A stretch of 64,000 bases of DNA from positions 13,268,001-13,332,000 of the forward strand of contig OZ004613.1 in the NCBI GenBank assembly GCA_963924565.1. Direction: 5' to 3'. This DNA is from Ascidiella aspersa (taxonomy: Eukaryota). Position 1 is the stretch's first letter, and every line of letters begins with the position of its first letter. The translations under genes were made by a program, and so were the position numbers. Under the pieces are notes generated by a model, which was not told the origin of the DNA, made no database searches, and worked only from the letters and a program-made list of their open reading frames with translations. Positions 12,476 through 59,260 of the stretch are shown here, in pieces.

Positions 12476-15400
12476 CTAAAACGAGACGTTGTAGCACCTT
12501 TCAAGAGTGTTCAGGTCAACCGTGAGTGGCTTGATCTTATTTAAGATTTGTTTAGGCGGAGGGCATGGTGGTGGCGTTAATCTGAAAATAAAAATTAGAG
12601 TAAAACTTTGTTAGGTCAAGGTACAAAGACGATCACTTGAGTTAACCATGTCAATCAATAATTATTTTTGTATTTAGGATTTGTATACCGGGATGATATA
12701 GAAGTTATTCTGATGAGTTGATTTATTCATTTGCCAACAAAACGAAAAATTATTTTGGGTAAAATCAGAAATAAGAACTAAAGGCTTCTTACATATTTCC
12801 TAACAAAAAGCACAAATAAATGTTACCCGTTGATCCTGTATTGATTTTCGCAAGGATTGAAAGCTTTGTTGTACTTAGTGCATGGACAAGAACATGTAAA
12901 ATGATTGGTTGGACACGTCGGAATCTGAATAGTTGAAACCACAAAGACGTTTAATCAATTATTCGTAGCCTACATATAAATTAGTCGTATATGTTCTCCA
13001 AAAATATGCGATGTTCAATTGTTATTGCATAATACAGTTTGCAGAAAAAAATTTGCTGCCGTTCTAAAGAACACTTACAAATGAATTGTGCCTGCAATAG
13101 CAGTCTGGAGTCATAAAGTTAGAGCACAGCTTAGAAGTTTTGTCCACCATAATGAGAAGTGCATTAGTGCCTTTTACGGGTTTAACTTCGAAATGAAAGC
13201 ACTCTGGGTAAAACGTTCGGCCACTGAACGAGCTTTGATTGGCAGAAATCTTGAATAAAATAAACAGAAGTTTATTGAAGACCCATGGGTATAAAATGCT
13301 AAAAAACTACAAAAAACTAAGTCCTTTTAAAATGGTTCAGTATGCAATAGTTTGGGTTGCTAAGCTGAACAGCCTTTGCATACTTCTAAAAATATGATTA
13401 ACACTGTTTACCGTGAAGGTTTTTTGAATGAAACCTTTCTCAATATTAGAGCATTGAGCCGGCTTCAAAATGTTGGCGGCGAATAAGGCGGCGGCCAGGT
13501 TTTTGTCCTCTGCAGCGATATGTCTGTTAAATGCTGTTTCAGGAGCTTTCAGGAAAGAAGGCGAAGCAATCACGAATCCGGAGTGATCAATCACCAAACA
13601 ACTGCGGCGTTATTAATATGGACTCAAAGTTACATGTTAAAGTTATGATTTGACGAGAATGAAGGACTGTACTTACGAGTATCGGCTTGTGTCGTTGCAA
13701 AATGGATAGAGCTCGGTAAGGATTTCAAAGAAGTATGACGTCACAATTTCAACTCCCATAGCGCCAAACATCTTATTCTTAACTGGATCTCGGATACCAC
13801 CAGGGCTATTTTCATCGGTTGTATACATACATGAACGAAAAACTGATCAAAACTTTTTCACGTATTTTTGCTTTAGATTTAGTGGTTGTTTGTTGTTTTC
13901 AGAATTCGTTTCTATACCTTTTGTCGCGGCAACCAAGATACTAAGCATAACTTTAACAGCAATACTTGACGGCCAAATTTGTCTGGACTTTAGTAAGTAA
14001 GGTCAAAGTAAGCAAAACACAAAGTATATAACAGAATAATCGATTTGGAATTTAATTAATATATTATGTACTGCCTACTAAATTTTCTCAAATTCAGAGA
14101 ATTTTGTTCAGAACCAATAAGAATATGACTCCTGTTGGTGACCAACACTGGTTTAGAAAATTTATACGATTTAACTCAATTCTATGATTGGGCATTCAAC
14201 AGTTGATGTGTAATATTCGTATATAGAGTGCCTTTCTTAAGAGTCCTTGTGTTAAAAAAATTGTGTGCAAGTACTGTAATTTGCGTTATACTTATTTACC
14301 TTCCTTCGAGAAGAGCTCTGCAAAAAGACATCACACTCAGTCCGCTCAACGCGTCACGGTACGGTGGCGTCATGACGTACTTGTCACGGTTTGCCTGCGT
14401 AGTTTCGTACCTGTATTTAAAAGATATGAAGCTGAATTTAGATAATAATTTCCTCTTACAAAACCAGTCGCGTTCAATTTCTCTTTCAGAATTGTAACTG
14501 TTTACTAAATATTTCTTAGTAATTCAGATAGATGAAGATATAATGTTTTAAGCCTAATATTAAAACACAGGCAAATAGTCCAATTCGACATAGCATAACT
14601 TAAAACTATAAGAAATCAGGATCGTTTGGCATAGAATAAATCAATAAAATGTACTGATGTTTCAACCCACCAAGATCGCGTGGTTGGGTGAAAATTGTTC
14701 GGCAACCGAGTCGGAGCATATGTTTGATAAAGTGGGCTTGGGTGTAATCTCAACGTTCACAGTAAATTAATAAGTGTACTTTGACAAGCAAACTTGCAAC
14801 AAAGTGACACTTGTAAATATTGTTTAGACTTTCCTCAAATTAAGAGACTGTTGATGCCTTATTTTGAGGCCAAATATATTTCTCTTTTAAATGATTAGAA
14901 CTTAATAATGACTGACTTAGACCAAGACAGAAAAGTCTGAAGAAGATTGGCTCCCGTATAAAGTCAATGTCACCATTTACATGTACGGGCAGAAGATTTC
15001 TTTATTTTTTACACATTTAGTTTTTCACAATGACACTTTGTTTTCTAAAAGTCTTTAGATTATTGGAGAAAATTACGCCTTCTCACCAGGATCGCATGGT
15101 TGGATCAAAATTGCTCGGCAACTGAGTTCCCGGAAAGATGCGCATTACGCCTTTCTTTGTCGCTATGTATCTCCAGAAGACGTTTTCAGTCAAATCGTTA
15201 TGTTCGACCTTCTTCCAAAGTTCCTCCGCTTTAAGAGTTGCAACAACTTCGTTTTTTACGCCAACCTGACAAGAGACAATTTATCAAGAGCATCCTATGT
15301 AATAAATAATAGTATAACAGCGTTAATAGCCCTCTGACGAAAAGTATTTATGACGGGTTAACCACTAACTTGGCCAAAAACTGTGATATAAACTAAATAT

Positions 15401-18400
15401 TTCATTTTACCTTTAAAAAAGTATCTAAAAAATAAAAACACTCCATACCTTTAACACGGTTTTTGTTGTTTTTCCTTCAAAGTAACTTGTTATTTGTCTT
15501 ACGTCATTCACGGTCTCAGGAACAGAAATATATTGCTCAGGGTCTTTGAAGGCCCTCGCTGCCAGAGCAACTGAACTTCTATCTATGAACAGAGAGAAAA
15601 CTAAAAAACGTTTACATAACCCCATCCAAGTTATGTGCCCTATCATTATTTTAAAATAGTTTTTTCAAGTACGGAAATTTGGTTTTGTATGTTAGACCAA
15701 TGGCTAAACATCCAAGAAGCAAACCTAAAAAGTAATTTCAGTAAATAAATAATGGGGTACTTTGCTTTTGCTAATGATGACTGTATTTAAGTTATCCAGA
15801 GCTGTGAGAATAAATTCGTTTTTTACATATTTGGAAACAAAACATCGAAGTTTATGCCAAACGCGCAGTATTTCTACAACGGAGTAAACAACATTTCACT
15901 GTATAGACGAATTAGGTAGAAAGCATTCTTCTGATCCCAACGTCTCTCGATATATTCGCAATTAGTTTATGTTGGTCATTGAACGAACTTTTTGAGCACA
16001 AAGTCTTTCCATGAAAACACAATTGCTTAGGATGAACCAGATCAAGTCGATGATATAGAAAGGAATCTGAGGGAAGAGAGCCGAGATTTTGAAGCAAGAC
16101 TTGTTGATCGTTGTCAGCCAAAACCAGGCAAAGCGAAAATTCAGTTCCCGGAATCTTAAAACATAATTAGGATTACATAATTTTTTTGATTTTTTTTTCT
16201 TTACTTCGTCAACATGAAGAAAAAGTGATATAAATCACGGCCGAAAAACGAAAAGACTGGAAATTGTTGAATTTGTACACGATCTTGTTTTGGTCAATTT
16301 TGCCGTAGTTTATAATCAACGCTAAAAATACGTTATCGGATTGAACGTTACGTATTTTAATACAGTAAATAAAACACTTTCGAACCCAAACAGAAAGATT
16401 TACAAACCTGTTTCCAGTAGTAGGTGGATTGCACTCGAACCTTCCTCACCGGATAATTTGTGCTGTCGCCTTGGGGAAGTATTCGGGTGGACATGAAGGT
16501 TTTGCTCCCCGATTCACCCCTAAAATAAAGTTTAATTTATAATCGAATTAAACATTTAAAGGGCTTTGCTTTGAAGTATTTAGTTTGAAAATTTGACTGC
16601 GATAAAATAACTTGAGAAAAACAATTAAGTAAACGAAATAGTTAATCATGTACCGTTTCATTGAAGCATAAACAGAAAGGAATTGCGGATCCGACTCAAA
16701 TGCGGTTACGTCGACAAACAATGGTTCGCTTGTGATCACCGTGGAAAATAGAGGGTGAGCAATTAATAAACCTGAAATTTAAAGCCACAGAACATACTGA
16801 AAATTTGTGTCACCTGTTTAATCTTTTATCTTAGACTAATATTTTATGCTATTTACTATAAAGATTTTTTAATTCAGATGGAGTTTAAATTCTTTGTCTA
16901 TGCTATAGTTTACACAGTAGGATCGAGAAAATATACCCTCTAAAAGTTTTTACTTTAAGGTAGGTAATCTGTGACAACATATTCTTTATATGTTAAGGTT
17001 CTGTAGAAATTGACATGCCGGTAAGCATCTAGCTATTACATCTGGTAGAATTTATCTCCATATGCTGTAATGTACAGTTCACCTTTTTGATTGATAACGA
17101 AAGAGTAGGAGAGTTCAGTTGGCCTAAAAAAGATTGATTCGGACAACATTTCCTCGATGCCTATATCAACTGCAGCAACTCCTACTAGTCTATTTGTATA
17201 AACCGGTAAAGCTGCCGTGATCACGGTACCTGGTAAAAAATGGATTATCCACTATCCGGTTAACAATTAACACGTGAATTAAACGAATAACAGCTATTTA
17301 CTATCGCATTTGCTTAGTTTTACATTGCATTACTCCGCACGAAATCTACTCAACAATGGGTAAGCAGATTCGTGCGGTAGATTTTTTTTTAGTTTTATTC
17401 TGTAACACCCCTGCACGAAAATTTTTGTATAACAGAAGTTTCACAAAATTATAAAGCAAATCTACCACCTTGTCCCCAGCCATCTAAATAAGGCACTGTC
17501 CAAACAGGCTCCGCAAAGCCTTGTCCTTCAACTGAATAGAAATTGTAATATGATCCCATTTGATTTCGCAAATTTGAAGGCGTTCGAATGCCTGTGAAGA
17601 TCCCCTTCTGTAGGAGTTTTCAAATAAAATCGTTGAACTCCCAAAGTTTTGGATAAATATAATTAATAAACATTTTAATTTTAAAATGCAAATAAAGGCC
17701 AAAATAGACGAACAACTTTTTGATAAAATTATTTTTTCACACACGTTGTTTTTTTAATTTGTTTTTAACAACACAAACTAGATGAAGCAATAGTATGACA
17801 AGATATTTTAAGTAAACTGCCCAAAAAGTATAGCGTTCGGAAGACCAATTTTATTATTTATTAGAAAACAAAAATGTAAAGAACATATCGATTTTGAAAG
17901 AGAACGGTCGTTGCTAAAATTAGGAAAAATAGGTGGTTTACGTCAAAAATACCACATTTTGGCATTTAGAACTATTAAAACTGATAAGGTAACAGCGAAC
18001 ACTTTAAATATCAGTAAAAAATAAATCCACAAAAAATGTAGCTTTAAATATAATAACAATCTTTAAGTTCTGGACGTAACTTTATTGGAGGAACAAATCG
18101 ATACACTCCCACTTTGAGAATTTTGTTAAGTTTTAGGTTCAGCAGACGTTTGGGGTTGTGGTATTAGGCTACGTAATAATGAATTTAATTATCCCACGTT
18201 AGTATTCTTTGCCATGATTTATCTTTACTAGTTTGTTTTATCGCTATAGTTTGATCGGACAATCGACTACAAATAAGCTAATTAAGCGCTTTAAGCTGTA
18301 ATTTGCTTTTGTACCAAAACAGTGCTGGGTTATGTTAATTTTCTGTATAACTTTATATATTATCCTGTTTGTACTATATTCGCCTTAGTATATGTATTTC

Positions 18401-21400
18401 CTTATCCTTAATTTTTTCGAAGTCGGCTAACACAAAAATTGTTCTCACCAGATGTAGGTTTTGTTGTACCATAGCCTGTTTAACACGTTAAACATTTTGT
18501 CAGGCGACAGAATCGTTTTCTGTATAAGTCTTACCTTGTGTTCGGGACCAACCTCTGCTTCTGTCATTCGCGCCATATTATACAAAATGGTCGGATCTGA
18601 AAAAGAATGGGAGTATGGCACTGTTATCTTCCATTAGGCACTGATTTTAAATAAGCAGTTTCCACACGGTTGATATTTAAAACACATTAAGAGTTTTGCC
18701 TTATGGTATGTGTAGGCGTAGCCACAATTTACCAAACAGGATTTATTAAAGCTCCTTGGGTGCCGTTTTCTCATTTTTATCGTGCCTTTTTAATCGGTTC
18801 TATAGTGCGGTATTTGTGCGGCGGCAGACGACCGGACGGCGGTCGTGTAATAAATGTCATCGCCTTACTGGTCACCCCGAAACTCTTACAAATCACATTT
18901 GTAACAAGGTAAGTAATGCACGTAGATGACGGGATTTAAAAGCTGGTTATTTGAAAATGTTAACATTGGACTGTAAACCGTTGCACGTGGTTACAGCAGG
19001 CCGAAGCAAATTTCTCTCTGAAACGAATAATTTATAATGATACTACTTCGTCGTTTCGGAAAACTTCACAAATAAAATAAAGCTATTTGCTTGTACCACA
19101 GTAGCATTCGTAAAACGATCAACAACATATATCCCCTTCACATATGACGTGCACGATAAAGTCGGCGACCTGAAGTTTTTGAAAAACCTTAGGGCTACAA
19201 TTTTCTTTTTTTTTGCTACAATTTTCTGGTCCACGGAAGTATTGAATTGAGCCAGCGGCGAGATGAATAATAAGGATCTTATTTGTTGACAGCAAATGAA
19301 AGTACCATCTTTGAGGAGCTGCATGATATCCTTATAGCGCAGCACTCAATATTTTTTGGACGCAAATTTTACATTGTCACTAGTATGGACACATCGTCAC
19401 AAGCGCCTTCAGGGTTGAACACAATAACAAATGGTAAAACACATTAATAAATCTGAAACGCAACAGTGACATACTAATAGAGTTTTTCAGACTTGCAGTC
19501 CAAAATTTACTGGAAGCACACTTTGACATGTGGAGCACCACATACTAAAATCTGAACTTTGCAATATGTTTGATATGAAAATCAGTTGGCGTTCTTCAAG
19601 CTGTTGATCGTCATTACATTCATCTGGTGGACGGGGCCTTTGTAAGGATTTTCGTCGACTTAAATCCTTCCCAGAACCCAGTATACACGAGATAGCCGGA
19701 TTGGTCATTTGAAGATATTTATGCGCTTTTGTCTGGTGGAAATATATTGTCAACAAATAAACTAGTGCTCGGCTATCATCAACTTACAGGGACAAAAAGA
19801 GTTCTAAAAACAGCAATCAAAGCGTCCATCGGTTTTTTGAATTTATAAGCATTTTCGAGCTCAAAATACATTTCAGCGACTCATGAATACGGTTTGGGAA
19901 GACCTTATATTCGTCGTCTTTTATATTGATATAATAATAGTGACTAGCTCGTCTATCCTAATACACAGAAAATTTGCAACAACTGTTTCTCCGTGCAACA
20001 TTAGTTAGTGAATATGGCAAACAAATACATGTTCGGAATTCCATAATTTGACTTTCAAAGACATCAACAAGAAGGAAACAGCATTACTTTCTCTAAGTGT
20101 AAAAATTGTTTATCTAGAAATCTTTGTACGTTGTTCAAGGACTGCACGAATTTGTAATAATGATCATTTTTATCATCGCTTTATATTTTCACATGTCAAC
20201 GTTATGACAACATTTTATGAAGCGCAAACGATTGAAACCCTCCCAAAACACCCTTGCTTGGAGCGCTCCAGTGTAATGCGCATTTTGCAGCCATGCACGC
20301 TCTCGCCAATGCTTTTTCGGTAATAAACCCTCGGGCTAGTTCGGAAGCAGCACTTACAGTGGCTGTACCGAAAATAAGTTATTGGTAGCGTTCTGCAACA
20401 GCATGTTGGTGGAGTTTTAAAACCGAAGAATTTTAGTGGAGTTTTAAAACCGAAGAAATTCAATTCCTGCCATCTTGATGGCCGACATGTTCGGGAACAT
20501 TTCCGAACGGCGTAGGTTTACAGCATTTACCGACCACAAACCTTTAACGCGAAAACGGCATATTTTTACAAATGCCAACTCAAGTACGGATGCAGCCTAC
20601 AGCACATCGCAGAAAGAAAACAAATTTGTGGCAGATGCACTTAGATCTTAATCAAACAATAAATTACATCACATCGACTACGAATCGCGAGCCGCAGCGC
20701 TCCAATACTTAGAGCTTAAAGACGTGTCCGCTCGAAATCCCGGCTCCAAACCAAAGATTATTGGCACTGCAAGATTTTCGACTTATCTGAACTCAAAAGC
20801 GATATTAATACACTTGCAGATATATGCCCCCCGTCCCATGACATGAGCTTTTAAAATCATTGTAACAAAAAATGTAGCAAATGACATTGGGGGTTGCTGA
20901 TACTAATAAAATAACTAAACGAATAAATACTAATAAAAGTTTATTGCTTGGTGTGTGGCAAGTACGACAAAATGTTTCAAAAAAGAATACATGGAAGGTG
21001 ATAAATCTACACATTTATAACCTTTGTATTGTTGTTGTATTACTGAGAGTTGTTTTGTAGGAGAACAACTAATAATGGGAAACAAAGTTGAGAAAAAACA
21101 AATTGTCATACCAAAGCTATTTCCAAGACCGTATGTCAGTATCAGAACTGAATTGTTGGCATTTCTTGTGGTAATGGTGTTGTAAATATCCTGAACCGCA
21201 TTATTTGGTTGGCCGTCCGACATAAACAGTATGACTTTATCCGCTGCGAAAAAGACGTTTTAAACGCAAGAGACTGAAATGTGAAGAATATCTATATTTC
21301 GTATAACAAGATGTCAACAATATTTGCGCTAAAATATTTTAAAAATAAATGTCTTTTAAAAGTAAACTTACCCTTTTTAATGCTTTTGCCAAACTCAAAA

Positions 21401-24400
21401 AAATCGAATGCTGCGTTTAGTGCAACGAGGTAGTTAGTTCCACCTAAAATGTTGTGCAATACAAAGATTTTATCGTCGACAATTCAAAAATCTTTAAACC
21501 AGGCGACACTTATAAATGTAAATTACATTTGGACAGTTACTTTAACCTAATGAAGCAGGGTTGTGTCATGTTTTAAATTGTCTTTAAATAACGCTAGCAG
21601 ATTTACGTTTTATTTAAATAATTTGTTGTACAATATTTCAATTTCCCAGCTATGTTATTTTACTTAATATTAGCCAAACAAGTTATGTGGTAGGCCTACA
21701 CTAAAACGTATACAAATTCTTTAATAAAATGTTTTAGGATCCTTTACCGAAAAGGCTTCTATTGAACAAAACGAACTTTAAAAAATGGGATACGAGCCAC
21801 AAACGAAGGCCCATGTATAAAGTTACTGTGAAGTTCAAATTATCGCATAGCGTTTTACTTTTAAGCAGGGTGAATTTATTATTATCGTTCATGATATGCC
21901 GTGTGTCATGCGAGGAAGAAAATGGTGAATAAAACACATCGAAAATAAATAAGTTCCATTTATACCCACTTGTGTTGGACAATCATGTATTATAAACGCG
22001 AAACAATATGGAAACAATGTCACCGGAAAAAACTAAAGATCTGTTTTTAGTTTGATTAAAACTTACCAATGGCGTATATTGTATCGATATGTTCTTTCAC
22101 CCTTTTTTTGTTTTGTGGGGTGGCCTGGGCGAAGGTCGACTTGAAGCAGGTGCCGTTGGGAATGCGGTTGTCCGTAAACAATGCTGCATTAGTGGAAAAC
22201 GCGACCAATGCAAACTTAAAACAAAGTAAAAAGAATGAAACAAAATTTACGTCTAAGGAGATATTTCGATCAATCCGGAACACTAACGTATTTTTTTATT
22301 AAAGAGTTTCAGTGGTTTTCTTTCTAATTAGGGCAAACTAACTGTACAAACATTATATCTATATAATAAACAAAAGTGTTGTCGTACAAGGCCGTCTTAG
22401 TAACAACGTGTTTTAGCAAAAACTTCACATTAAACCGTACTTCGTCATAAGAGTTGAGGGTGTCAATCACTGTTTTTGTCGCTCTTCTTGCATGCTCCAT
22501 AAACGTTATTCTACCAAACCGCTGGTTCATCGAACCACTCTTATCTAAAACGATCACAACTTGTTTGGGCTTGGGGGCAATGGCCTGCACGTACCAGGAC
22601 CTGAAAGTTGAAGGATAAAATTGTTCTTGTTTTATCTTGAAATATTGTATTTATTCTGCTAATAAGTTAATACTTGCTTGAAGTATATTGTAAAGCAAGT
22701 GGATGTAGGGATCAAATGAAATTAAATTTAAATAAAAAACTAGAGCTCTCCAATCTTTCCAATTATATTAGAAGTAACATTACCAAACTATAAATAACTG
22801 CTAATCACTTACATTCGTTTTGATAAGTTATATATGCTTTTAAGAAAGTGGATGGCAAATAATTGTACGCAACAATTAGCTCTTTCTTTAATTTACCAGT
22901 ATGAACCAAATCGTGGCTCGACGAAGAAATTAAATATTTAGAGAGTATTATATTTGCTCGCGACCGATTACAACGAATTACTGGAAACATTTACAAGTTT
23001 TTCCTACTTTACAATCAAATTGACTGTATATAGGCCTACAAAGAAAAACATGGATCCTTATACCTGAAGCGGTTATCGTAGTTTCCACAATTCGTCACTT
23101 TGGTGGCGGGAAATTGTGTTGTGACGCCCTGCTCACTTCCGAAATACTGCCACTTCATGGAAGGGACGCTGGCTAGATTGTCCATGCAAGCTCTGCTGAA
23201 ACCACTTTGCAATCTAGTGGACGAGCTCGGTGCGTTGGACGAAATCAACTCACAAACTTGAGAAGTCGAAACCTGAAATACAGAATGATGTTGTTCCCAA
23301 ACTACAACTATAGCCTTCGTTGCGACTCACGACTGTCAAGTTTGCTGTAAAAAAAAACGATTTAGACTATTACAAATTATCTTATAACTTTTGAATAATT
23401 TCGATAAATAGAATTACACCTAAAATAACATGGAAAAGTGTTAAAGGAACCCACATATGATATACAGTACAATAGTTTATCTCATTCAAGATCAGGTACT
23501 TACATTTCGTCGAAACTTAGGGTTGTATTCCAGTTTTCCTAAAGGAATTTGGCAACATTGATACTCATCCGATGTCAAACCAGAGAACGATTCCTGTACA
23601 GCTTTTTCCAAATTCCTTAGCGCCTTTGTCAGTCTTTGAAATTTTTTCCTCAATGCGTTACTCATCTTAAATATATTTCCAAGTTAATAAGTTGTTGAAT
23701 ATAGTTGTTGCTCTATGTGAAGTTAACATTACGAAATTGCGCAAACCAAATGTTTAGAAATGATTTAATTATTCCTTTTTTCCAAGAGATATCTGCCAAG
23801 TTTGGCGTTTTGCGCTCGATTTTGGCTTCGCATTAGATGAAGGCGCGTGACCCAACTACTTAAAAAGTACGTCGCTTCGAACAGTTTGTTAAACCGTAAC
23901 AAAAAAGAACAAAAACAATAATATCACTTAAAAAAAGGAGGGTAAGAACCCCTCAACCCTCCCTGGATACGCCACTGGGGGCAATGGATAATATATAAAT
24001 TTTAACCTCCATTGGTAATACATACTACACTTAAAAAATAATACTAATAGTCGCATTTTAAAATTCCAGGGGAGGGAACGAGATCTGCTTATGCTGCTCG
24101 ACTAGACTTGATATACCCTACATAGGTCTCAGGGTTGGATAAAGCCTACTTGATTTGGCATGCACTTACTGTGTCCAGCAATTCAACACCCTGTAAATCA
24201 TAACGACTGTAGTTCAGAGTATCCATATAATCCTGAAAAAATAAAAACATACTAAAGATTTGCGACGCGAATATGACAGATGCAAGGCTGAATCTCTTCA
24301 GGATACACTTACCTTTAAAGCCATGTTTCATTATAAACTTGAACTGTAATGCGTATGCTATTGCAAGCTACAAAAACCTAATCAAGCCAGCCACTGATCG

Positions 24401-30600: not shown

Positions 30601-30720
30601 TGGAGCTAGCATTGTTTCGTCTGAGTTGCCGCTTTACGCATGGTTCTAAACACATTTTGTTTTATAGATTTTTTATTTATTTATATTTATTTATTGTTGC
30701 AAAATTCGATTGTCAGACTA
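24675..30720. promoter_or_regulatory. Divergent intergenic region between the start codons of genes A and B
   Basis: Inferred from head-to-head orientation; transcription start sites cannot be seen. GTGGAAAACTACT recurs at ~27656, ~29256 and ~30437. Confidence 0.5.
27927..28212 (+). pseudogene. Older 5' fragment duplicate of gene B (upstream sequence plus exons 1-2)
   Basis: MIARAQVALLICFLTGLASA...EQSLK then TAA at 28062-28064 after a small deletion; exon-2 homolog at 28150-28212; no exon 3 follows. Confidence 0.85.
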
Positions 30721-33700: not shown

Positions 33701-36700
33701 GCATTCGTCCGGGTTAAAGCCTTGAAACACACCATGCATCGTTTGGCAAACAAATTTGAAGATGTATTTTCTAACAAAATATTTGTTTTCCTGATGCAGA
33801 CCGTGGTACGTGCAAGCCAATGTTCCAATACCAAAGCAAGTTGTCATCGTTATAGACCGAAGCGGTTCAATGAGTCAAGAATATAAAGGAGTGTCGTACA
33901 TGAAACTTGCAATAGAAGCTGCGAAAACAGTGATAGACACTTTAAATCCCTATGACAAGGTTTGTTGCAGGATACTGTACATACTTGATTTTTGTGAAAA
34001 TGAATATCATACTTGTGTTAATGTAAAAATACTGTAAAAATAAACAAAACTATTGTATTTTTAATGAATCCTAACTGTTTTTGTTTGTTTCTGGGTTCGT
34101 TGAATGGATGCCAGTCTAAATGTGTCAAATAAACAAACCTAACGTTATTATGCGTTACTTTGAATTCCGATGTATACATTTAAGCCAGATAGCTGAATTT
34201 AATGCTTTAATGAAAACAATTTTTTTAAGTTTGCTTTTATCGCTTTTTCGTCGAGTGCTGAACTCTTCACGGCCAGTAAGATCCCAAACGGCACCTGTTA
34301 CAGAACAAGCTTCGCCCAGGCAACGCCAAAGAACAAAAAGCTCGTTAAAGAGCACATCGACGATATTTATCCAAGCGGTAAACTTCAATGTTGTCCGCAA
34401 ATCATTGGAATTTATTTAACTCTAATTTTTTGTTGTATAAATATGTCTATCGTAACGTTTTATTAAACCTGCAAATTATGTAATGCTGGAAATAGTGTCT
34501 CGTAAACAATATTTACGTTTGATAGACTTTGTCATGCAAATTTAAAACTTTCCTGTATATATTTCAGGTGGAACAGGATTTGTGGCAGCATTGCAAGCAG
34601 CATTCACATTTTTTGATCTGGTCAAAGACGACACTGAAGGTTGGACAATTTAATGGATAATTTACACTATGGTTTTGGCTGTTGACTACACTGGTGACAA
34701 TGTATAGAATTCCACAATTTCCTTCCGGGCAAACTGTTAAAAGAAAGATTGCCTGTAATGGAGGAGTTTCTTCAAATTATCAATAATTTTTCAAATTGTC
34801 CAAAAAAGGATAACAATAATTTTAAGTAATATTGTGCCTGATAACTCTTTGATAAATACTTTAGCAAAACTTTTAAATTTGCCTATAGCTTTTTTTACTT
34901 TTTTGTTAAATAGTTTGATAAAAATCTGGGCTGTGTCCAACATGATTTGTCATGGGACAGAAACAATGCTTTAATATATGCGTTTTTAGATGAATACGAT
35001 AAGAAAATAACCTGAATTTGTCAAGGAACAACACAGTTAAAATAAAGTTAAACGTCTCTCACAAATTTGTTTACGTTTATATAAACAAGTTCGTGTTGAA
35101 ATAAGTGTAAATTAACAACAAAAGTTTTAATATGGTTATCCCTTTCATTCGGGTGACTGATATTCAAAACGTATTTCGTGGTTATAAGTGCAACAAAGGG
35201 AGGGCTTATTGTGCAATGCGTCAAAAAATTCAAATTAACTACTTCCGGATTTTTTTTATTGAAAAAACTTGTGAAACCTAAAATAGATGGTTTATAGAGC
35301 GTACTATTTTTTGATACATCAATTGCTTTTTGTTGTGCCTAATGTGTAGCCTATTATTAAGTTTTTTAGGGATTAGCCTATTCTATAATTCAGGGTTCAT
35401 TATTTTTTCCATAAGTTTCCACCAAATGAAACACCATCCGGAAGTTAACAGAATATGTGCGTTTATTAATTGAAACTAACTGCAAATCCTAATAAACCCA
35501 AACTTTTTTATTAGGCCCTAACACTTAATTAGCAACACAAACAATTATTAAAAAGCCCAAAAAATCAACTGACGGCAATTAACTAAAAATAAAAAAAAAT
35601 TAATGATTTATATGTAACTGTTTATAGCAGTGGTTTGGGGATTTCGTGGTTGAGTTTGGGTTTGGACAATTTCATCATCATTTAAAGAAGATATGGTGTG
35701 CATACGTTAAGTGGTGCAGGATAATTGAAAACAACTGTATTACTAAGTCTGGTAATGAAAAGTACCGTGTTAAAAAATGTTTAAAAAAACGTTCAGTAAA
35801 ATGATTTGTTTACAAAAGCAATAAATACTGAATTACATAGAATAAGAAAAATTTGAGACAGAAACTTCCCTAATTTCGTAAAATATTTTCGCAATGGACC
35901 AGCTTAGGTAACGTGTCATCTAGGATAACCTTCCTCTCAAACTATTCACGATTTTGCTTAATAGCGCAATTTGTTACAGCAGATAAGGTTATGCTGTTCA
36001 TGTCGGACGGGAAACCAAGCGATTCAACAAGCAACATTTACCAAACCATAACCTATAGGAACCGGAACCTTAACAATTCAGTGATTATAATGACGTATGG
36101 TCTTGGATCTGGCGTAGGTTCGTGTTTATTTTTGTTTTCAAACGTGTGGCATAACATCCCCTGTGTTAAATTTTTTACAACCCTCTGAATAAACTTTTGT
36201 TATTTATTTCTTTTATAAGTTAAACGTTTTGAATTTTCTTAATTAAAAGAAAACAAAAGTACGGTATTTTATTTCATCTGTCTTAAATATAGTTAAATTT
36301 TTTTCAGACTCAACAGTTTTGCAGAATATGGCAAAATCCACGGAGATAGAGGTTGGATCCGATAACAAGGTTTGACTATTCCATTGTTTTGATGATAATC
36401 TGTTGAAAGTTTTTTAGCATAATGGATATTTTGTTTCATCTTTGATGTCTGTTATAGCTTGAATTGATGGTGGTAAAAAAAATTCAATAAAGAAATGCAG
36501 GTGACTCCAGCGTAACACGTTAGGTTGCACTATTACTCATTTCGACCACAAGTAAAAATAGAATATATTGTTATTTATAAAAGACCATGGTAGGCTAAAT
36601 TTACTCAAAATAGGATCTGAAACTCTATTAAAAAAAATGAAGGTTTGTTGCATTATTTTCCTAATTTTATATATGTATAGAAAAATTTCATTTATTAAAT

Positions 36701-39700
36701 TTTTTCGATTAGGGTGAATTTAAAACTTTCGTTTCAGTTCCGGTTCGACTAAATTTATTTTCAAAACCGATTAAAAAGTTACGGTTCGGAAACAATAAGA
36801 GTTGCGTTAAACCTAAAAAATCGTTTAATAAATGTAGAGAATGATTGTTTTGAACTGTAACCCGTATTTCATCTAAGTTTCGTGACGTATTAAATGCCAA
36901 ACAGCTCATTATTGAAATATCTCAAAAAAACGTTTTGCTTACTGAAATGAACATATTTTCATTCATTTTTTGCACTGTTGTAACGTATGTCACTTTTTTG
37001 TGAGTTATCTGAGATATAAAGTTTATCTCGAAACACTTTTATGATTTTACATTTATTCAAAAATAATTTACAAGTCTGATAAAATAGAGTTAACGAATAA
37101 AAGTTATCCTATGCTTTTCATTGTACTAATCGCCAAACAACTTTTTATTTAAATACTAATCAAAGAAGGAAAATTCGGACATTGCATTAAACACAAGTTG
37201 TAAGGTCATGCTGGAGTTAACCGCTTTTTAACAAGTTAAAGTTCGGGTTTCTCTAAAACATTGGGTTATTGTTTTGATTTCATTAAATAAAGATGATTTT
37301 AATAACTATTTCTGTGCTATTTGCAGCAAGGCCAATATACAGCAATTTCAACACCTTCGAATTTGCGAAATAAAATGGCGTCATATTACAATTTCTTTTC
37401 AATTCAAGGACAGCGAATTACAAAACCAGTGTGGACAGTACCTTATCTTGATGGCTGGGGTTTAGGTAATGGAATAATGTATTGAAATGTCATACAATTT
37501 TTTTGATTATTAATATTTATCAACCAATATTAGGAAATGTTTTTATTAAATATTTGCATTTTTGTAGACCTGTACTTCATTGTACAGGATAAATCCAGGC
37601 AATTTACTTTATTTATTGGTCTATTTTATTATTGTTTTACCAGGGTTAATGATCACGGCAGCTTTGCCAGTTTATACAAGCAATCTAATAGGAGTTGCCG
37701 CAGTGGACATAACTATCGAAGAGCTGTTGGCCGAATCAAGTTTCTTTAAACCAACTGAACTCTCTTACTCATTTGTTATTAATAAGAAAGGTAATGTATG
37801 CTTATAGTAAGGAAAGATGTTCCTGAGACCTAATGTTTTCGAATTGTTAACTGTTTAGGATTTTACAGTAAATTTGCAGGCCCACCGTACGTAGCTTAAC
37901 AGATTTCATTTTATATCGTCCATAACTCGTTATCGACATTCATGGGTTTCTAAGTTTATCTTGGTGGCATGAGAAGTGCCAAATGACTAATATTGCATTT
38001 TTAACTTATTAGTAAATTCCAAATTCTGAAACACATGTTCCGTTATAGGTTTCAATTTATATTAGTGGAATCCAAAACTAGTGGAATCCAAAAAAGCAGC
38101 GGGTGGCTGTCAGTCAATCACTGCTTAGCTAACATTTATGTAAACATGTAAAAATTAAGTGAAACTGTGTAATATTAAAATATATATTTTAGTAATCACC
38201 TCGGTATTGACAGTTTTGTTTTACGATACATTTATTAGATAAGTATACTTGAATTTTAGGTCTGGTCATCAACCATCCCTTATTTCCCACCGTGACCACG
38301 GGCGAACCATTGTTTGTCGAAGTAACCGCATTTGAGTCGGACCCGCAATTCCTTTCTGTATTTTCATCAATGAAGAGGTAAACGAGTATTAGAGTTTGGT
38401 TAGGAAGCCAATAAAAGTTACGAATGTTTTAATATTTCGAACCTTGCGCTAACCCAGCGCCACAAAACCTTTAATGTCGAATAATTTACCCACAAAAACA
38501 CGAAATGATTTAACCATTATAAATACTATTGAATTATCTCCACTATTATCTGCAACGCGTGTAACTATGTAGGTTTATCAGAAATTATAAAATAGGAACC
38601 GATACCTCATAGCAACAGTGCAAAACCAAAAATACATTGTTGTTGGCTTTTTACCTATTTTGCGCCCAGTTTGGCCTGGTAACGTACAGCTGTCAGAAAA
38701 CAGAATGTGAAAACAAAGATTTATGAAGTTCCAAAGTTTGCCCAATAAAAGATAAAGTTCGTCCAATGAAAGGATATAATAACTGGTAGAAGAAATGAAA
38801 GGCATAACGTCTTGCAAACCTGGGCAATTATCGCCTAGCATTTTTCATACAAGTTATGCTACACTGAGAAGTTTCATTTGGGCCGTAGGCTATATTATAC
38901 ACAATATACTGACGAGTCACCGTTTTGTCAGATCCCATTCATACGTGAACACATTCAAATATATTGAAGGGTCCCTAATTAACCATATTTATAGCCCGGG
39001 ATCCAGCAACAAAAGTTAATTTATCGCAGTTCAATGTTTCACGAAGTTAATTTACCGCAGTTCATTGTTTTAAATTGTACACTCATTCTTTAACAAGGGT
39101 AGAGAAGCTTTGGCTCTCGAGCCATTTAGGGCTCTTTGAATACCGTCATATGGCTCTTATGATAAAGTAATCTTGCTCGCAAATAGATCTGAGCTATCAT
39201 TTATTATCATGGCATGAATAAAACTCCACGCGGCCATGACTCCTTCCAAACTGTATTTTTTTAACAAGTTTAATAACACTTGAATAAAACTCCACGCGAC
39301 CATGAACCCTTTCAAACTATGGGTAATAGCAAAATTTTTCTCGGTCTGTTTTTTCGTGGCTGTTAGCCGATTTGATGAAACTCAGTAACCGAAGTTTTGC
39401 AAACTTAGCCACAGTACTTTTTCGCGTTTACTTTAGAATTAGATGTTGAAATATATAACAAGACTCTCATGGAAATACAACCAAAAATATTCGGCTTTTA
39501 TGGCTTTTTCAATTGAAAAGATTTCCGACCCCTGTTCTACAACATGTTTAATCCTATTCAGCGGCGGGTCAGGTAACAAAACCTTCATGTCCACCCGAAT
39601 ACTTCCCCAAGGCGACAGCACAAATTATCCGGTGAGGAAGGTTCGAGTGCAATCCACATACTACTGGAAACAGGTTTGAAAATCAATAATTTTTGACGGT

Positions 39701-42700
39701 TGCTGTTTCGCCATATATATATATTGCTGCCATTAAATCGTGAAACGTATAACATTTGTAAATCTTCGGGTTTGTAGTTTTTCAGTATCGGTTTAATTCT
39801 ATTTTGGCGTACCGGTACTTGCCTTAAATATTGGGTTTGTTATCGTTGTACAAAATTGTTTACGACTTCCAACGTGGTATTTTGGTTTGCCATGCTGTTG
39901 AATTATTATATCGATGTTTTTAGATTTCAGGAACTGAATTTTCGCTTTGCCTGGTTTTGGCTGACAACGATCAACAAGTCTTGCTTCAAAATCTCGGCTC
40001 TCTTCCCTCAGATTCCTTTCTATATCATCGACTCGACCTGGTTCAACCTAAGCAACAGTGTTATCATGGAAACAACTTTTGCTCAAAGGGTTAGAGTGTT
40101 CAATGCATGTAATGCGGAAATAAGTCAATTATTCCACGCCTGATTCGGCTTAAACATTTTTTCCCACATGGATTTTGTCGAAATTAGTAATAACAAAATG
40201 CATGCTGTTATATCTAATGTAATGTTTAGGACATAAGTATATTTATCATATCAGGGTTAGGTCGAGCATTTATTGGAGTAGTCGCTTATTTACATTAGTA
40301 TAAGATTAACGCACAGCACAATAGATAGTTAGAAACATGTGACTACAGAGCACGTGGCTGAGGGACGGCGGGTAACCTCTCCCAGTAGAACGGCGTGATT
40401 ATGCCATGACTGAAACGAAATATACAGTACGTTCCTGCAATATGGTGCCAAAAGCCAAAATGTTAATAGCTTTTCGGATCTGCCAAAATTTCTCACTGTT
40501 CGCTATGTTATATCCAACATGTATGTCTGCTCCTTAAAACGTCACAATGTGCATTTTATAACGTTTAGGACCTAAGAAAATTTATCGGGCCACAATTAGC
40601 TTTGAAACAAAATAAACAATCTGTTGTTGAGTTTTTCTTCAACTTTTATCATTTTGCTGCAGACCAAAGCTCAGTTGCTCTGGCGGCGAGGGCCTTCAAA
40701 GACCCTGAGCAATATATTTCTGTTCCTGAGACGGTAAATGACGTTACAAAAATGGCAAACTACATGGAGGGAAAGACGAGTAGTACCGTTTTAAAGGTAT
40801 GCGGTTGTCGGTTCGTTTAACTTAGGTACATCGTTATGAAAAGCGTTTAATGCCTATTCCAAATCTATAGCAGCTGTGACCTTTCTCCAATTACTGTCTG
40901 GCTTGCACTCTCAAAGCCTTTTAAAAGGAATAATTTTAAGAATACTTTTTACTCTTACCAAAAAATCAATTTTTTTTCATTAAAACAAAATAGTCTATTT
41001 AGTTTTTATCAATTGTAAAACTAAAATATGTTATTCAATTGGAAAATAATCACTGCATCACTGCATGGAATATAACCTACCCGTTTGGTTTTGTAGATTT
41101 ATATAAGTGAATTATGAAATCACTAATTTTACATGTCAGGCTGGCGTGAAAAATGAGGTGGTGGCCACTTACAAAGCAGAGGAACTTTGGAAGAAGATTG
41201 ATGAGGACGACTTGAGTAAAAACGTCTTCTGGAGATACGTAGCCACAAAGGAAGGCATGATGCGCATCTTTCCGGGGACTCAGTTGCCCAGCAATTTTGA
41301 TCCAACCACGCGATCCTGGTGAGTTAATTCATAGGCTTGATTCTCATCAATAATAATCTAAAGGATTTTAGGAAGCAAGGTGTCAGTGTGGCAAACTGAT
41401 GTGTAAAAAATGAAGATATATTTGCCGCCCGTACACGTAAATGACGACAATGACTTCATAAGGGAGCAAATATTTTCAGACTGTCCTGCCATGGTCTTCG
41501 TTCTAATTAAGAGACGGCGATGATGCCTTATTTTAAGGCGAAATACATATTTCTCTTTTAAATGACTAGATTTTATTAATGACTGACTTTGACCAAGACA
41601 GGAAAGTCTAAATAATATTGGAAAGGTTCACTGTGTTTCAACTTTTGTTTGTCAAAGTAGCCACTTATCAATTTGCTGTGAACGTTGAGATATAACCCAG
41701 CCTATATTATCAAACATATCCTGCTTTATGCCCCCCCGAGTGTTTATCGTTTTAGTCAATAAAAATTATTTCTTTAAATCCAGGTACGAATACACGCTAG
41801 CAAACCGTGACAAGTACGTTGTAACTCCACCGTACCGTGACGCGGCCAGTACACTCAGTGTGATCTCTCTTTGTCGAGCTCTGTTTGAGGGAAGGTAAGC
41901 GAAATGCACCGCGACCCTCACGATAAGCCAAACAATATAATAATGTGTCCCAGTAGCCACAGCTGCTAGTTGATGCAATAAAACGCATTTATAATTCGCG
42001 CCTACTCTTGACAGTTTTACTTTTTTCCTGTTTTGCTATCCTATTTAAAAACAAAAACATTTTTCAGTAGTTTCTTGATAATATAATCTATCCAAATTGT
42101 ACAACATTTTTGGCTGTATTGTTTATTCATGTTGCTGTTTAATAACACATTTACTAAAACTAAAAAACAGACAAGGTGGTGTCCATGATCCAATCAAGGA
42201 TAAGCTGATTGGAGCAATGGGAGTTGACATTGTGACGCCATACTTCATCCAGATTCTCTCACAGCTCTATCCATTCTGCAACGAAACAAGTCGATACTCG
42301 TGAGTGCGATCACTAAAACTTTAACCTTAACTTTTTTATTATTAAACATATTATTTCAAACATTCTTCGTTCGGCAGGTGTTTGGTGATTGATCACTCCG
42401 GATTCGTGATTGCTTCGCCTTCTTTCCTGAAAGCTCCTGAAACAGCATTTAACAGACATATCGCTGCAGAGGACAAAAACCTGGCCGCCGCCTTATTCGC
42501 CGCTAACATTCTGAAGCCGGCTCAATGCTCTAATATTGAAAACGGCCTGATTCAAAAAACCTTTACGGTAAAACGCTCGTATATTAATCAGGGATCTGCT
42601 AAGTATTTTATGTAACACACGGTGACATGGATAATGTGTTTCAACCACAGATCACAGTAAAACGATAGGTTGATATTCATTTCGAACTAAAAATAATTGA

Positions 42701-45700
42701 ATGAAATTTACATATTTTGTATCTTACAGTTTGTTCGTTTACAATGTAGACTTTTTATCATATCTTGGTATTTTTAAAACTTGCCGCTTGTTTAAGATTT
42801 CTGCCAACCAAAGCACGTACATCGGTCGGACCTTCTACCCCGACTGCTATTATTTCGAGTTGAAGCCGGTAGAGGGCACCAACGCGCTTATGCTCATGGT
42901 CGACAAATCTTCAAAGCGATGTTCGAACTTTGTCATATCAAGTTGTAGATGCACTCAATCATACAACGCGGATGTAAGTAACTTCTTTAAAATATATGTT
43001 TGCAAAGCTGCGTTAGCTTTTTAAAAAAATTTTTTTTTAATTACATGGAGTTCATTTAGATAGTAGTTCAATTTTTTTGTTCCAGACGCCAACCTGCTCA
43101 TCGTCTGCTTACACTAACTGCTCATGTCCATGCACCACCTATAATGGAGCATTTCACCCGTGCGAAAACCAATACCTAATTGACGGGTAAGAAATACACG
43201 CTTTGTCACATTTGAAGTTGTTGTTTCTTCCAAAACTAATTAGGTTTGCATAGGCAACCCTGACAAATAGTTTCTAGTATAACACCCTTGTGGTAGTAAA
43301 ACAGTTATTGTTTCACATATAAAATATTTATCAAGATCGGGGTTCCACTGTACTGATTTTTAATTATATTTTTTTACTAAACATAAAGGCGGGGATTTTT
43401 ACTTCTTCTAAAAAGGAAAGCTTTGTTGCTTCATTTTAAATTCTGTTAATATCTGGATGAAAGTCGATATAAAATCAATTTCATTTATTCATACAAAACA
43501 CGAAGGTATTTTTTTCTGCCTGTTTGGGGATAAATAATTGGCCTCAATGTATGACGCTTTTTTATTCAACCTGAAGTTGACATATTTGTGTCACGAAGGA
43601 TCTAAACAAAATAATAAAATATAGAATGACCATGTGACAAATGCACACTAGGAATTTAGTATGCCGCTATAACGCACAATTTGGGGCAATGTAACTATAT
43701 TCAATATTAAATTCAAAATATCCTACTATTCTAAAGTAGTAGATATCTGCTATATTTTCTTTCGACTTTTGACAAAATTGGCGGTTTCGATACATACATG
43801 GTTTTACAGCGATTTCTGTTTTAACCGTACAACCTGCTCCCCTTTTTCAGTTCGACACCCCCGCCGTGCACCCCGGATCAGGTCGATCTTACAAAAGTCG
43901 GTACACCTCCAGTTGACTTAACCACTCTTGGCAAGTGTTACAACATTGCTTTTACCGTACCCCGAAACAGCACCGCCAATGCCGGCGGCCAATCCACGAA
44001 TATCACAATTATTGTGGTGTGCGTCGTGGTGGGTTTGATTTTGCTTGCAATCATCTTCATGTGCTGCAGGAAGTGGAAGAGCGGTGCTTCCGTTGGACGT
44101 TCGGTAAGAACATAAAACTATTACTATTTACTTCAGTGACAGTTTACACTTGAAATAGTAAAAAATACACTTGTACAAATAATCCTTGAGCTGAGTAATC
44201 GTGACAAATTTTACATGAACAAAATTTTTCGTTTCCCAACCTTTTTTACACTAGTGCCCCCTTGGGCTCAATATTATTTCATATCGCCCCCCTCATCTTG
44301 CTTTACAGTAAAGTATTATATTAATCGTTGTCTAACATCATATTGTCTTCACTTTCGATTCGATAAGCTGTCAGTGATATTTTAGGTTGCCTAACATACA
44401 TTCACTATTGGAATTTATACATACATTATTTCACCAGGTTATGTCATTACCAGGAAAAATTCATATCTTTCTGCACCAAGACTTCAAATCCTTTTCTAGT
44501 CGCGGGCCGCAACCAAACTCATAAATGTCTCTGTGGGCCGCGCAAAATGTTAACTTAGAAAAATGTTAGAACAACTGTGAATCAGGCGGGCCTCGGATTT
44601 TTTTTATCCATACTAATAATGAAAAGTGTAATAGTGTTTGTTAATGTTTTGAAGTCCGGGCGCACCTGGCGATCGAAGCGAGCGCGATTTTTTGGGGTAT
44701 AACGGCATTTCTTTTAAATTTCCTGCTAGTTTTTATTTACCGTTAAAAAATATATGTCTAATATTTTTGAATACGTTTTCCGTTTGTCCGCGACACACTT
44801 GGCAGCCTTCCACGTCCCAACGGTAAAGAAGCGCTGATCTAGTCCAAAGACAGCATCAAAACGTAAACAAACTGGACGTAGAAAGACATTCGCGCAGCGC
44901 GAAAATTTTTCGCCCGTACTAAGTTAAAATAGTCAAAAAGTATTTAAAATGGACTCGTGTCTAGTTGTCAAAGAGGCGGCGGGTCGAGGGCCGTAGATTG
45001 GCGACCCCTACTTTAAATATACAAACATTTTGCCGCGTATAAAACGGTGAAACGCGCCAACAACCAACAGCTTTACATAAGAAAGCCAATTATTACGTAA
45101 CAATGGTCGGAAAACTACTACAAGTTCGCAGTACGGAAGTAGCCATTTAAGGTTAAAAGTTACCTACGTCCTACAGTGCTGTTTGTTACTATTTTTATGT
45201 GAACATTTTATCAAATTTTGATATAAGAACTTTCATGTAACACCCCCTTATGTGCGTTCAGCGCCCCCAAATCATGAAAAGACTCAAAACGCCCCCTTGG
45301 AACTCGCCAACGCCCACAAGGGGGCGGTACCGCCCACGTTGGGAACCTCTGCATTAAACGATGATATAAGAACGTATTTGTGCATTCAATAAGAATTGTG
45401 CAGATTAACTTTACTTGGCCGGGTAAACAGAAGTAAACATACTTCGCTATGAAAACCGAAATATTTTTTTTAGTTAACGGGAATGGTCAGCAACAGATTT
45501 CCTAATTATTCCTCTGGAAGACACTAAGTATAGAAGACCAATTGTTACTAAAAATGTCATCGAATAATATCGTAAACAAAATAAACCTTTGTCTTTTCAT
45601 AAACTTATCAAATTAAGTTATGGTCCTTACCACAAGCATACCATATTGAATGCCTTTTTTATCACGTTCTACTTTTGCAGTTATACACAATTTGGGGTGC

Positions 45701-46288
45701 TTATAAATCCACTTTCCAACTTTTTTTTGTTGTACCAGTGTATACCGGTATATCGTCAACAATTTTCAGTAAAACAGTCGTCGCAGGCATTAAATGTTTT
45801 ACTGAACAAAAAAAGATTTCTTACTGTTTCTATTTTTCAAAATAATCCATTCGTTTAACAATATCCCAAGTGATCATTTTAATGGCCTAATTTCATAACC
45901 TGTTATAGGTGCAATACCTTAAAATACGAGGTTATGAGAAGCTTAAGTTTTAATGGCGCATGCTATTTTTGAAGAATTTCGTCAGAATCAAGCCTGGTTG
46001 TCACTTCTTTATTTTTAGGATCTTAGTGCAGGGGAACAACTTTATTAGTCAAGAATTGTTAAATTTTTTTTCAGTATTTGATCTTGAATTAAATTGCCAC
46101 AGGCTCCAGCAACGATCCACACAGCTCCGGCACCAGCGGCCAACACAAACTACGGATACGCGTCTTCGCCGAGTGCACCCCCACAACCTCCCCCTACCAA
46201 CCCTTATTACACGGCCGATAAAGCACCACCTGGGCAATTCCCCCCGAGCTATTCCGCGTCAGTTGGCTACAACAACCATCCAATGTAG
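30721..46288 (+). CDS. CACHD1-like: Gene B: VWFA and cache domain-containing (CACHD1-like) type I membrane protein, ~1101 aa
   Basis: 23 GT-AG exons: 30721-30870, 31038-31100, 32717-32878, 33273-33481, 33800-33959, 34230-34377, 34568-34639, 35980-36117, 36308-36369, 37327-37465, 37644-37790, 38260-38377, 39562-39673, 39924-40089, 40663-40796, 41140-41318, 41784-41894, 42171-42299, 42378-42567, 42797-42973, 43086-43186, 43851-44103, 46103-46288 (3306 nt). Same intron phases as A. MIDAS DRSGS..GGT..SDG; TM ITIIVVCVVVGLILLAIIFMCC followed by RKWK; Pro/Tyr-rich tail. Confidence 0.9.
44231..45351. mobile_element. hAT-like MITE with a second decayed hAT-like element inside (~44490-45010), gene B last intron
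   Basis: GTTTCCCAACCTTTT ... GTTGGGAACCTCTG termini; inner GCGGGCCGC / GAGGGCCGTAGATTGGCGACCCCT ends; no clear TSD. Confidence 0.55.
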
Positions 46289-59000: not shown

Positions 59001-59260
59001 GGCATTCGTCCGGGTTAAAGCCTTGAAACACACCATGCATCGTTTGGCAAACAAATTTGAAGATGTATTTTCTAACAAAATATTTGTTTTCCTGATGCAG
59101 ACCGTGGTACGTGCAAGCCAATGTTCCAATACCGAAGCAAGTTGTCATCGTTATAGACCGAAGCGGTTCAATGAGTCAAGAATATAAAGGAGTGTCGTAC
59201 ATGAAACTTGCAATAGAAGCTGCGAAAACAGTGATAGACACTTTAAATCCCTATGACAAG
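56024..59260 (+). pseudogene. Gene B' - exons 1-5 of a gene B copy, truncated in intron 5 by the tandem-duplication junction
   Basis: Intact exons 1-5 with only synonymous differences from B seen; sequence jumps at 59333 back to the equivalent of 55238. Confidence 0.75.

Follow-up and report, generated by a model that had tools for sequence, protein, structure and literature searches.

An anchored and an anchorless CACHD1-like gene stand head to head in an expanded family of the ascidian Ascidiella aspersa

We analysed a 64,000-nucleotide stretch of the genome of the ascidian Ascidiella aspersa (assembly GCA_963924565.1, contig OZ004613.1, positions 13,268,001 to 13,332,000 of the forward strand), called the window below and numbered from its first base. 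It carries two divergently transcribed genes for CACHD1-like proteins, named A and B here (Table 1). G+C content of the window is about 35% and it contains zero N. Comparison of the window with itself gives two patterns. Exon-sized blocks of the minus strand at 13.1-24.7 kb resemble, in inverted arrangement, blocks of the plus strand at 30.6-43.2 kb, and in a long direct repeat 18549-34582 recurs at 46988-64000. Translated comparison of the two inverted regions yields 22 collinear exon blocks. Splice sites were picked jointly in A and B, with GT-AG ends, equal phase and open frames required, and this joint model has a single clear solution for nearly all introns. Two sites were set by hand, namely the intron-13 donor (at the end of the conserved block) and the A intron-20 donor at 13079, chosen as by far the better site and with no change of phase. 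In the resulting models all shared introns (21 of 21) are GT-AG and have the same phase in both genes, exon length is equal in 20 of the 22 exons, and the proteins are divergent paralogs with 71.7% amino-acid identity. The ATG codons are at 24674 (A) and 30721 (B), with 6,046 bases between them. An inverted duplication is the best explanation for the origin of this divergent pair. A previous sequence-only reading of the window had described A and B as sharing exon phases, diverging from a common interval of about 6 kb and ending differently, B with a transmembrane helix and a motif-rich tail and A with a stop at CYNVSF; on all three points our models agree with it.

Table 1. Features of the locus in window coordinates (tract and tail entries are predictions)
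Feature	Position	Strand	Remarks
Gene A	12476..24674	-	22 coding exons, 985 codons; exon blocks, joint splice model, intact open reading frame
A last exon (exon 22)	12476..12581	-	ends ...LNTLERCYNVSF; TAG at 12476-12478
AATAAA signal	12358..12363	-	115 bases past the A stop
Gene B	30721..46288	+	23 coding exons, 1101 codons; exon blocks, joint splice model, intact open reading frame
B exon 22	43851..44103	+	CYNIAF, 18-residue linker, helix IIVVCVVVGLILLAIIFMCC, RKWK, phase-0 donor CG/gtaaga
B tail exon (predicted)	46103..46288	+	61 residues, proline-rich, NPYY and FPPSYSASVG; from sequence and phase
Interval between divergent ATGs	24675..30720	.	6.0 kb
Decayed additional copy of B exons 1-2	27927..28218	+	in-frame TAA in exon 1′
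Putative conversion tract 1 (A exon 4)	23058..23278	-	B partner 33267-33487, 95.5% identity; proportion of synonymous differences (pS) about 0.1, residues 121-175
Putative conversion tract 2a (A exon 13)	16397-16512	-	B partner 39569-39684, 95.7% identity
Putative conversion tract 2b (A exon 14)	15991-16164	-	B partner 39914-40087, 92.5% identity
Putative conversion tract 3 (A exon 19)	13407..13601	-	B partner 42378-42572; 9 differences in 190 bases
Duplication copy 1	18549..46988	.	self-comparison and flanks
Duplication copy 2	46988..64000	.	continues to window coordinate 76496
A′, dead 5′ fragment of A	46988..51269	-	exons 1, 2, 7, 8 and part of 9
A′ exons	51120-51269 (e1), 50765-50827 (e2), 49915-49986 (e7), 49655-49786 (e8), 46988-47034 (part of e9)	-	exons 3-6 deleted
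B′ proximal exons 1-7	60141..64000	+	gene runs to 75769, outside the window
4.1-kb unit, present twice	55238-59352 and 59355-63466	+	99.7% identical; doubles B′ exons 1-5

Gene B is predicted to encode a CACHD1-like type I membrane protein. Its single helix, IIVVCVVVGLILLAIIFMCC, occupies residues 1009-1027, has a Kyte-Doolittle mean of 3.47 across 19 residues and is followed by a 74-residue cytoplasmic tail with NPYY and PPSY motifs; A has neither helix nor tail. The tail exon is a sequence-based model: the strong phase-0 donor at 44103 is compatible with an acceptor at 46103, and a stronger acceptor at 46075 would yield a tail of 5 residues. We accept the exon at 46103 since FPPSYSASVG of B resembles FPPSYEESVG at the C-terminus of a CACHD1-like protein of Clavelina (P0002, the nearest named homolog, 48% identical to B across 980 amino acids), and PPxY is frequent at the C-termini of invertebrate homologs.

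Gene A encodes a signal peptide, VWA_N, a VWA domain with a DxSxS motif and putative cache regions, and has no transmembrane segment. The protein ends with CYNVSF directly before TAG, its terminal residues are polar, and past residue 590 the Kyte-Doolittle mean reaches a maximum of 1.26. No exon of A is missing, since its residues 25-985 align end to end with residues 21-993 of the full-length Clavelina protein (45% identity across 975 amino acids). In three paralogs elsewhere in the genome (C1a, C1b and C4, see below) the homologous exon ends shortly past CYNxxF, and a separate transmembrane exon with a helix and basic residues is located 0.5-1.1 kb downstream. No such anchor exon was found for A on the minus strand of the 3.5 kb between its stop codon and the next gene (8990-12476), where no open reading frame has a hydrophobic 19-residue window with a Kyte-Doolittle mean of at least 2.2 and none matches the helix or tail exons of B.

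Read mapping covered window positions 10450-16449, i.e. the 3′ half of A, with one RNA run (X7, tissue unspecified, about 6% of the run used) and the DNA runs X6, X1 and X2. The RNA run gave 24 reads, the first mate of which is always on the plus strand, and this fits minus-strand RNA in the usual stranded libraries. Depth is confined to bins that hold or adjoin A exons (save 15650-15849) and is zero in intergenic sequence. Specifically, it is 1.42 in the bin containing the stop codon (12450-12649), 0.22 in 12250-12449 and zero below 12250, with coverage ending at most about 230 bases beyond the stop. There is low-level transcription of A, from the minus strand, and its transcripts finish soon after the stop codon. 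At position 13475 the RNA has the A base and at 0 of the 14 sites in exon 14 where A and B differ was the RNA flagged as differing; these discriminating bases exclude that the reads on exons 14 and 19 were cross-mapped from B. The stop codon has no base change or indel reported in X6, X1 or X2, and RNA covers its bin. X1 and X2 have a 30-base insertion 13 bases past the stop (12463), so this segment behaves as untranslated sequence. A is a real, intact, transcribed gene without a membrane anchor. The absence of an anchor had been claimed in the sequence-only reading, and the polar C-terminus, the empty downstream scan and the intact reading frame bear this out; lack of transcription, which that reading had named as a case against itself, is contradicted by the RNA reads in a single orientation. 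Other individuals (X1, X2, X6) have insertions relative to the assembly at 12463 (30 bases) and at 13044-13047 (128 bases, in A intron 20), and there are about 80 variable sites in 6 kb near the 3′ end of A.

Searches of A and B against Pfam, PDB and large protein collections were made exon by exon. In PDB, exons 4 and 16 match CACHD1 (8s7c) only. Fish CACHD1 (P0072) aligns with E values of 3e-101 to A and 1e-105 to B over about 930-970 residues with about 26% identity. The Clavelina protein aligns with mouse CACHD1 over 953 residues (24-976, 1.3e-109) and with alpha2delta-1 over 425 residues (151-575, 2.5e-24), and across most of the ectodomain both A and B resemble CACHD1 in sequence more closely than they do alpha2delta. 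Exon-level Pfam matches to VWA_N (6e-06) and VWA_2 (1.7e-04) stay under the gathering score owing to the short exons, and those to MCP-like_PDC_1 and VGCC_alpha2 are weak. In P0002, VWA_N followed by VWA is above threshold, as is MCP-like_PDC_1, with dCache_1 below it; the alignment of P0002 to 8s7c spans both double-cache regions and extends to residue 1021 of 1102. The MIDAS motif (metal ion-dependent adhesion site) reads VIDRSGSM in B and VLDKSGSM in A, both of the DxSxS form, and DHGAS in mouse CACHD1; the disrupted MIDAS that is a hallmark of the vertebrate protein is found in neither A nor B. Since DxSxS is kept in most invertebrate homologs too, the intact site looks ancestral. PDB matches of B exon 5 to a designed repeat protein and ITIH4 are of no use beyond showing the DxSGSM motif. 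Neither A nor B combines a glycosylphosphatidylinositol (GPI) signal with a best match to alpha2delta. By these alignments the family of A and B is CACHD1-type, not alpha2delta.

In the assembly (308 Mb, 75 contigs) exon 4 occurs at nine places: four in the window (A, B and two identical copies in B′, a further B-type gene discussed below), two on C1 and one each on C4, C6 and C3. When the copies outside the window are tiled, C1 proves to carry two genes in tandem and C4, C6 and C3 one each. The genome thus holds eight full-length CACHD1-like loci and one dead fragment, in three ascidian subfamilies. An exon 4 profile made from seven copies of this genome and searched against a representative protein library found Clavelina lepadiformis (48% identity to B), Styela clava (38%) and Ciona intestinalis. 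A maximum-likelihood tree was built from 21 proteins, in which the paralog rows are tiled tblastn pieces and not curated models; near-identical isoforms, proteins shorter than 900 residues and about 20 more distant full-length matches were left out. In this tree A groups with B (support 100/100) and the two with C1a and C1b (100/99). Clavelina P0002 and the own C4 gene join that clade (99/98), Styela comes next (100/99), C6 falls with the clade containing Ciona P0159 and P0011 (96/96) and C3 with P0075/P0040 (100/100). On this topology A, B, B′ and the two chromosome-1 genes are a lineage-specific clade; B as the ordinary single CACHD1 ortholog is excluded by the multiple genome copies together with the tree. 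The sequence-only reading had called for a genome-wide search for further head-to-head pairs and a phylogeny against CACHD1 and CACNA2D, expecting a lineage-expanded family rather than a housekeeping channel subunit. Both expectations have held, with A and B in a lineage-private clade of a family that is not alpha2delta and B not a single housekeeping ortholog. The two C1 genes lie in tandem on the minus strand at C1:6736000-6770000, each with a separate transmembrane exon, and past its exon 22 C1b has a long (CT)n-like run.

Over the whole alignment of A and B (Nei-Gojobori) nonsynonymous divergence (dN) is 0.18 and synonymous divergence (dS) 0.85, giving a ratio of 0.21, and synonymous differences are near saturation in most windows of the alignment. 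They drop to 0-0.13 at residues 121-175 (exon 4), 526-585 (exons 13-14) and 796-840 (exon 19). These windows coincide with nucleotide tracts of 92-97% identity ending within about 10 bases of exon borders; over residues 526-585, which tracts 2a and 2b cover, pS is 0.05-0.13. We read the three near-identical regions as gene conversion between the inverted paralogs. At position 13475 in A exon 19 the assembly and the RNA have the A base and the DNA of X6 and X1 has the B base, which looks like a conversion event that is still segregating. Outside the tracts, private residue changes in A and B number 57:27 with C1a as outgroup and 66:20 with C1b (p at most 0.001), and in the tree the branch of A is twice as long as the branch of B. 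A is constrained, but less than B, and changes two to three times faster.

We propose, with a probability of roughly 0.55, that A is a soluble competitor or modulator that acts beside the anchored B. In this reading the locus belongs to a set of CACHD1-like type I membrane glycoproteins that expanded in the ascidian lineage, and B has kept the ancestral layout, with its signal peptide, the VWA_N and VWA domains (the latter with an intact DxSxS metal site), two predicted double-cache regions, a stalk rich in cysteine, a single transmembrane helix and a tail that contains NPxY and PPxY. Following the inverted duplication that presumably gave the divergent pair, A would have dropped anchor and tail, so as to end right past the conserved CYNxxF and be polyadenylated about 120-140 bases later. 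Since A ends there with neither anchor nor tail, it is expected to be exported as a free ectodomain. A is kept intact by purifying selection, though it evolves faster than B, and short conversion tracts would leave A and B nearly the same in exons 4, 13-14 and 19. Secreted A could then compete for, or modulate, whatever B-type receptors bind outside the cell, which might, if vertebrate CACHD1 is a guide, be Frizzled/LRP6 or voltage-gated calcium channels. No sign of the chemosensory, immune or gamete role suggested in the sequence-only reading was seen. Vertebrate CACHD1 is the sole functional lead for A and B: it binds Frizzled and LRP6, its ectodomain touches the Frizzled cysteine-rich domain and LRP6 at sites overlapping the Wnt and DKK sites, and the ectodomain alone lowers the WNT3A response in a reporter assay (PMC7615972). 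Moreover, mammalian CACHD1 is shed by BACE1 (PMC7949136). A and B make a plausible candidate pair of receptor and soluble competitor in a locally expanded family.

Several points weigh against this proposal. Secretion of A is a prediction from sequence and RNA, and Frizzled/LRP6 or calcium channels as partner proteins of the ascidian subfamily are proposed by analogy. CACHD1 of vertebrates, hemichordates and brachiopods has a membrane-proximal cysteine-rich module that this subfamily does not have. More specifically, C..C..DC..C.WC is present in P0072, P0060 and P0115 and absent after the CYNIAF-type motif in A, B, P0002 and P0016. As B exon 20 has no match in PDB in addition, Frizzled binding cannot be assumed. 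RNA support amounts to 24 reads, with 0 splice junctions at the reporting threshold, and includes reads at 15650-15849 in model intron 14 of A, which has a weak donor (AAA/gttcgt); these may reflect unspliced RNA with intron retention or another donor. A rare alternative 3′ exon of A may be compatible with RNA data this thin. Splicing of A into a downstream transmembrane exon was the other case that the sequence-only reading had named against itself: the scan of 3.5 kb and the end of RNA past the stop speak against such an exon. Relaxed constraint on a gene in the course of losing its function would likewise account for the faster rate of A.

This last point leads to the main rival of the secreted-competitor reading, according to which A is a receptor that has begun to decay: with its anchor it lost its function, transcription is residual, constraint is relaxed and A is becoming a pseudogene. 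In favour of this, A has gained private amino-acid changes at two to three times the number in B and is expressed at a low level, and B′ is an example of how a stop codon can arise close to the helix in this family. The 3′ untranslated region of A has a weak trace, in collinear order, of the linker and helix of B, which would suggest mutational loss; 20 of 300 shuffles reach its score, so that it is not significant. However, every A exon (22 of 22) is open and all splice sites are kept despite near-saturated synonymous sites outside the conversion tracts. A pairwise dN/dS of 0.21 is too low for mostly neutral drift of one lineage, and each of the four DNA sources seen has the stop of A. We consider decay of A unlikely, while taking it as the alternative that deserves most attention.

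The direct repeat was delimited with flanks from the same contig. It is a 28.4-kb tandem duplication, 18549-46988 copied to 46988-76496, and the second copy extends 12.5 kb past the window end. Its junction is clean, the flanks are unique on both sides and the left break is inside A exon 9. Copy 2 is without 21764-23757, which contains A exons 3-6, and without the segment at 27927-28218. The join of exon 2 to exon 7 in A′ is out of frame, and with the missing exons this makes A′ a dead fragment. B′ has GT-AG sites in 23 of 23 exons and differs from B by 17 coding changes, of which 9 are synonymous and 8 are not. Among them, codon 1030 (K1030) goes from AAG to TAG directly past the transmembrane helix (...FMCCR, then stop), about 30 bases ahead of the exon-22 donor. 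If this TAG is real, B′ would be an anchored protein without the NPxY/PPxY tail. The region of this codon is at window coordinate ~73.3-73.6 kb, contig positions 13341348-13341599. In our scheme the tandem duplication would be a later event, which added the dead A′ and a full B′ whose nonsense codon past the helix would remove the tail. The sequence-only reading had seen here a second copy of the 5′ unit of the pair: the 5′ parts of A and B do recur at 46988-64000 with 93-99% identity, but what recurs is not a repeated A/B pair, A′ being broken and B′ complete. Within copy 2 the two sets of B′ exons 1-5 in the 4.1-kb units are identical to each other. Exons 2-5 of B′ total 594 bases, and splicing via both sets would keep the frame. 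The doubling of the unit could be an assembly stutter.

The same doubt can be raised about the whole repeated cassette, which may be an assembly artefact with two haplotypes placed in tandem and A′ and B′ as alleles of A and B. Divergence between the copies is 1-7%, within the range among individuals here, in which about 80 sites differ over 6 kb, and a stutter at the 99.7% identical 4.1-kb unit would point in the same direction. Against this stand 114 kb of contiguous sequence with no N, the clean junction inside A exon 9 between unique flanks, and the differences between the copies, which amount to deletions of 2 kb and 0.9 kb and an insertion of 4.1 kb. An artefact of this kind seems rather improbable to us.

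A more far-reaching version of the receptor and soluble competitor reading is speculative, and we give it little credence. Here A and B would be a coupled pair of receptor and decoy, in which recurrent exon-sized conversion, still segregating at 13475, prevents a few binding-surface exons from differing between the secreted and the anchored form as A diverges elsewhere, and the tail-less B′ would be a third, signalling-dead membrane form.

It is very unlikely that A is still membrane-bound, either through a GPI anchor or through an unsampled alternative last exon. Removal of one T from the TTTT run at 12479-12482 would make the C-terminus read ...GNASAKFKIIIVQFLLLY, a GPI-like signal, and the database homologs P0029, P0034, P0080 and P0091 have hydrophobic, GPI-like tails at their ends. 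Across the wider family the mode of membrane attachment varies; according to automatic models some homologs have GPI-like tails and one Tubulanus isoform is without a helix. However, no indel in the TTTT run is reported in X6, X1 or X2, the 30-base insertion of X1 and X2 is situated inside the would-be signal, no hydrophobic open reading frame exists in the 3.5 kb downstream of the A stop, and RNA runs through the stop and then ends. Finally, that A and B are ordinary alpha2delta calcium-channel subunits, with which they have VWA_N, VWA, cache regions and an intact MIDAS motif in common, is rejected on the CACHD1-only PDB matches of exons 4 and 16, the far stronger alignment of P0002 to CACHD1 (953 residues as against 425) and the type I topology of B, which has a tail in place of a GPI anchor.

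The known proteins nearest to the pair are of four kinds. Vertebrate CACHD1 has the domain order that is predicted for A and B, namely signal peptide, VWA_N, VWA, two double-cache regions and CxCPC stalk, and its single-pass type I topology with an unstructured tail is that of B; homology is seen in the E value of 1e-105 between fish CACHD1 and B and in the exon matches to 8s7c. It differs in the identity of only about 26% to A and B, in possessing the membrane-proximal cysteine-rich module, and in being encoded by one gene, whereas there are several copies here, with A lacking any anchor. In addition, its MIDAS motif is disrupted (PMC6231325), whereas the ascidian A and B have it intact. The CACHD1-like proteins of other ascidians (Clavelina XP_076811760, Styela XP_039253634, Ciona XP_078491527) belong to the same subfamily and are similar in length, the CY.IA motif, the transmembrane helix, NPxY and the FPPSY tail, with 48% (Clavelina) and 38% (Styela) identity to B. 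They are automatic annotations without study, and all those close to B have a transmembrane helix; among the predicted ascidian proteins compared, no secreted member head to head with an anchored one was seen. The BACE1-shed ectodomain of mammalian CACHD1 is likewise a free ectodomain of this family, active as a recombinant form in the WNT3A reporter, but it arises by proteolysis of one membrane protein and not from a separate gene (PMC7615972, PMC7949136). CACNA2D1-4, the alpha2delta proteins, have VWA_N, VWA with an intact MIDAS and double-cache domains as well, and membrane attachment varies across the wider family; they are GPI-anchored and cleaved into alpha2 and delta, and their similarity to A and B is far weaker and partial. 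In a literature search on CACHD1 with ascidian terms, no paper among the ten ranked highest names CACHD1.

Links of CACHD1 to Wnt receptors and calcium channels are recent, and nearly all work on it concerns the single gene of vertebrates. No invertebrates are more closely related to vertebrates than ascidians, and the locus shows that ascidians hold several CACHD1-like subfamilies. It also shows that in one lineage an ectodomain without an anchor has come to be encoded by a gene of its own, next to the anchored parent. If A indeed competes for the same partners as B, it would be a natural, gene-encoded counterpart of the mammalian shed ectodomain, and it would offer a handle for finding ligands of an invertebrate CACHD1 with an intact metal site. 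We regard this as a modest extension of a known family and not as a new kind of system.

Two minor features of the window are worth recording. The spare copy of B exons 1-2 at 27.9 kb was considered as an alternative promoter and is excluded as such by an in-frame stop before the exon 1′ donor, a TAA 5 codons ahead of the position of the exon-1 donor. Downstream of A, the neighbouring gene on its strand, at window positions 8275-8988 (minus), is a single-exon open reading frame of 237 residues with about five C2H2 zinc fingers.

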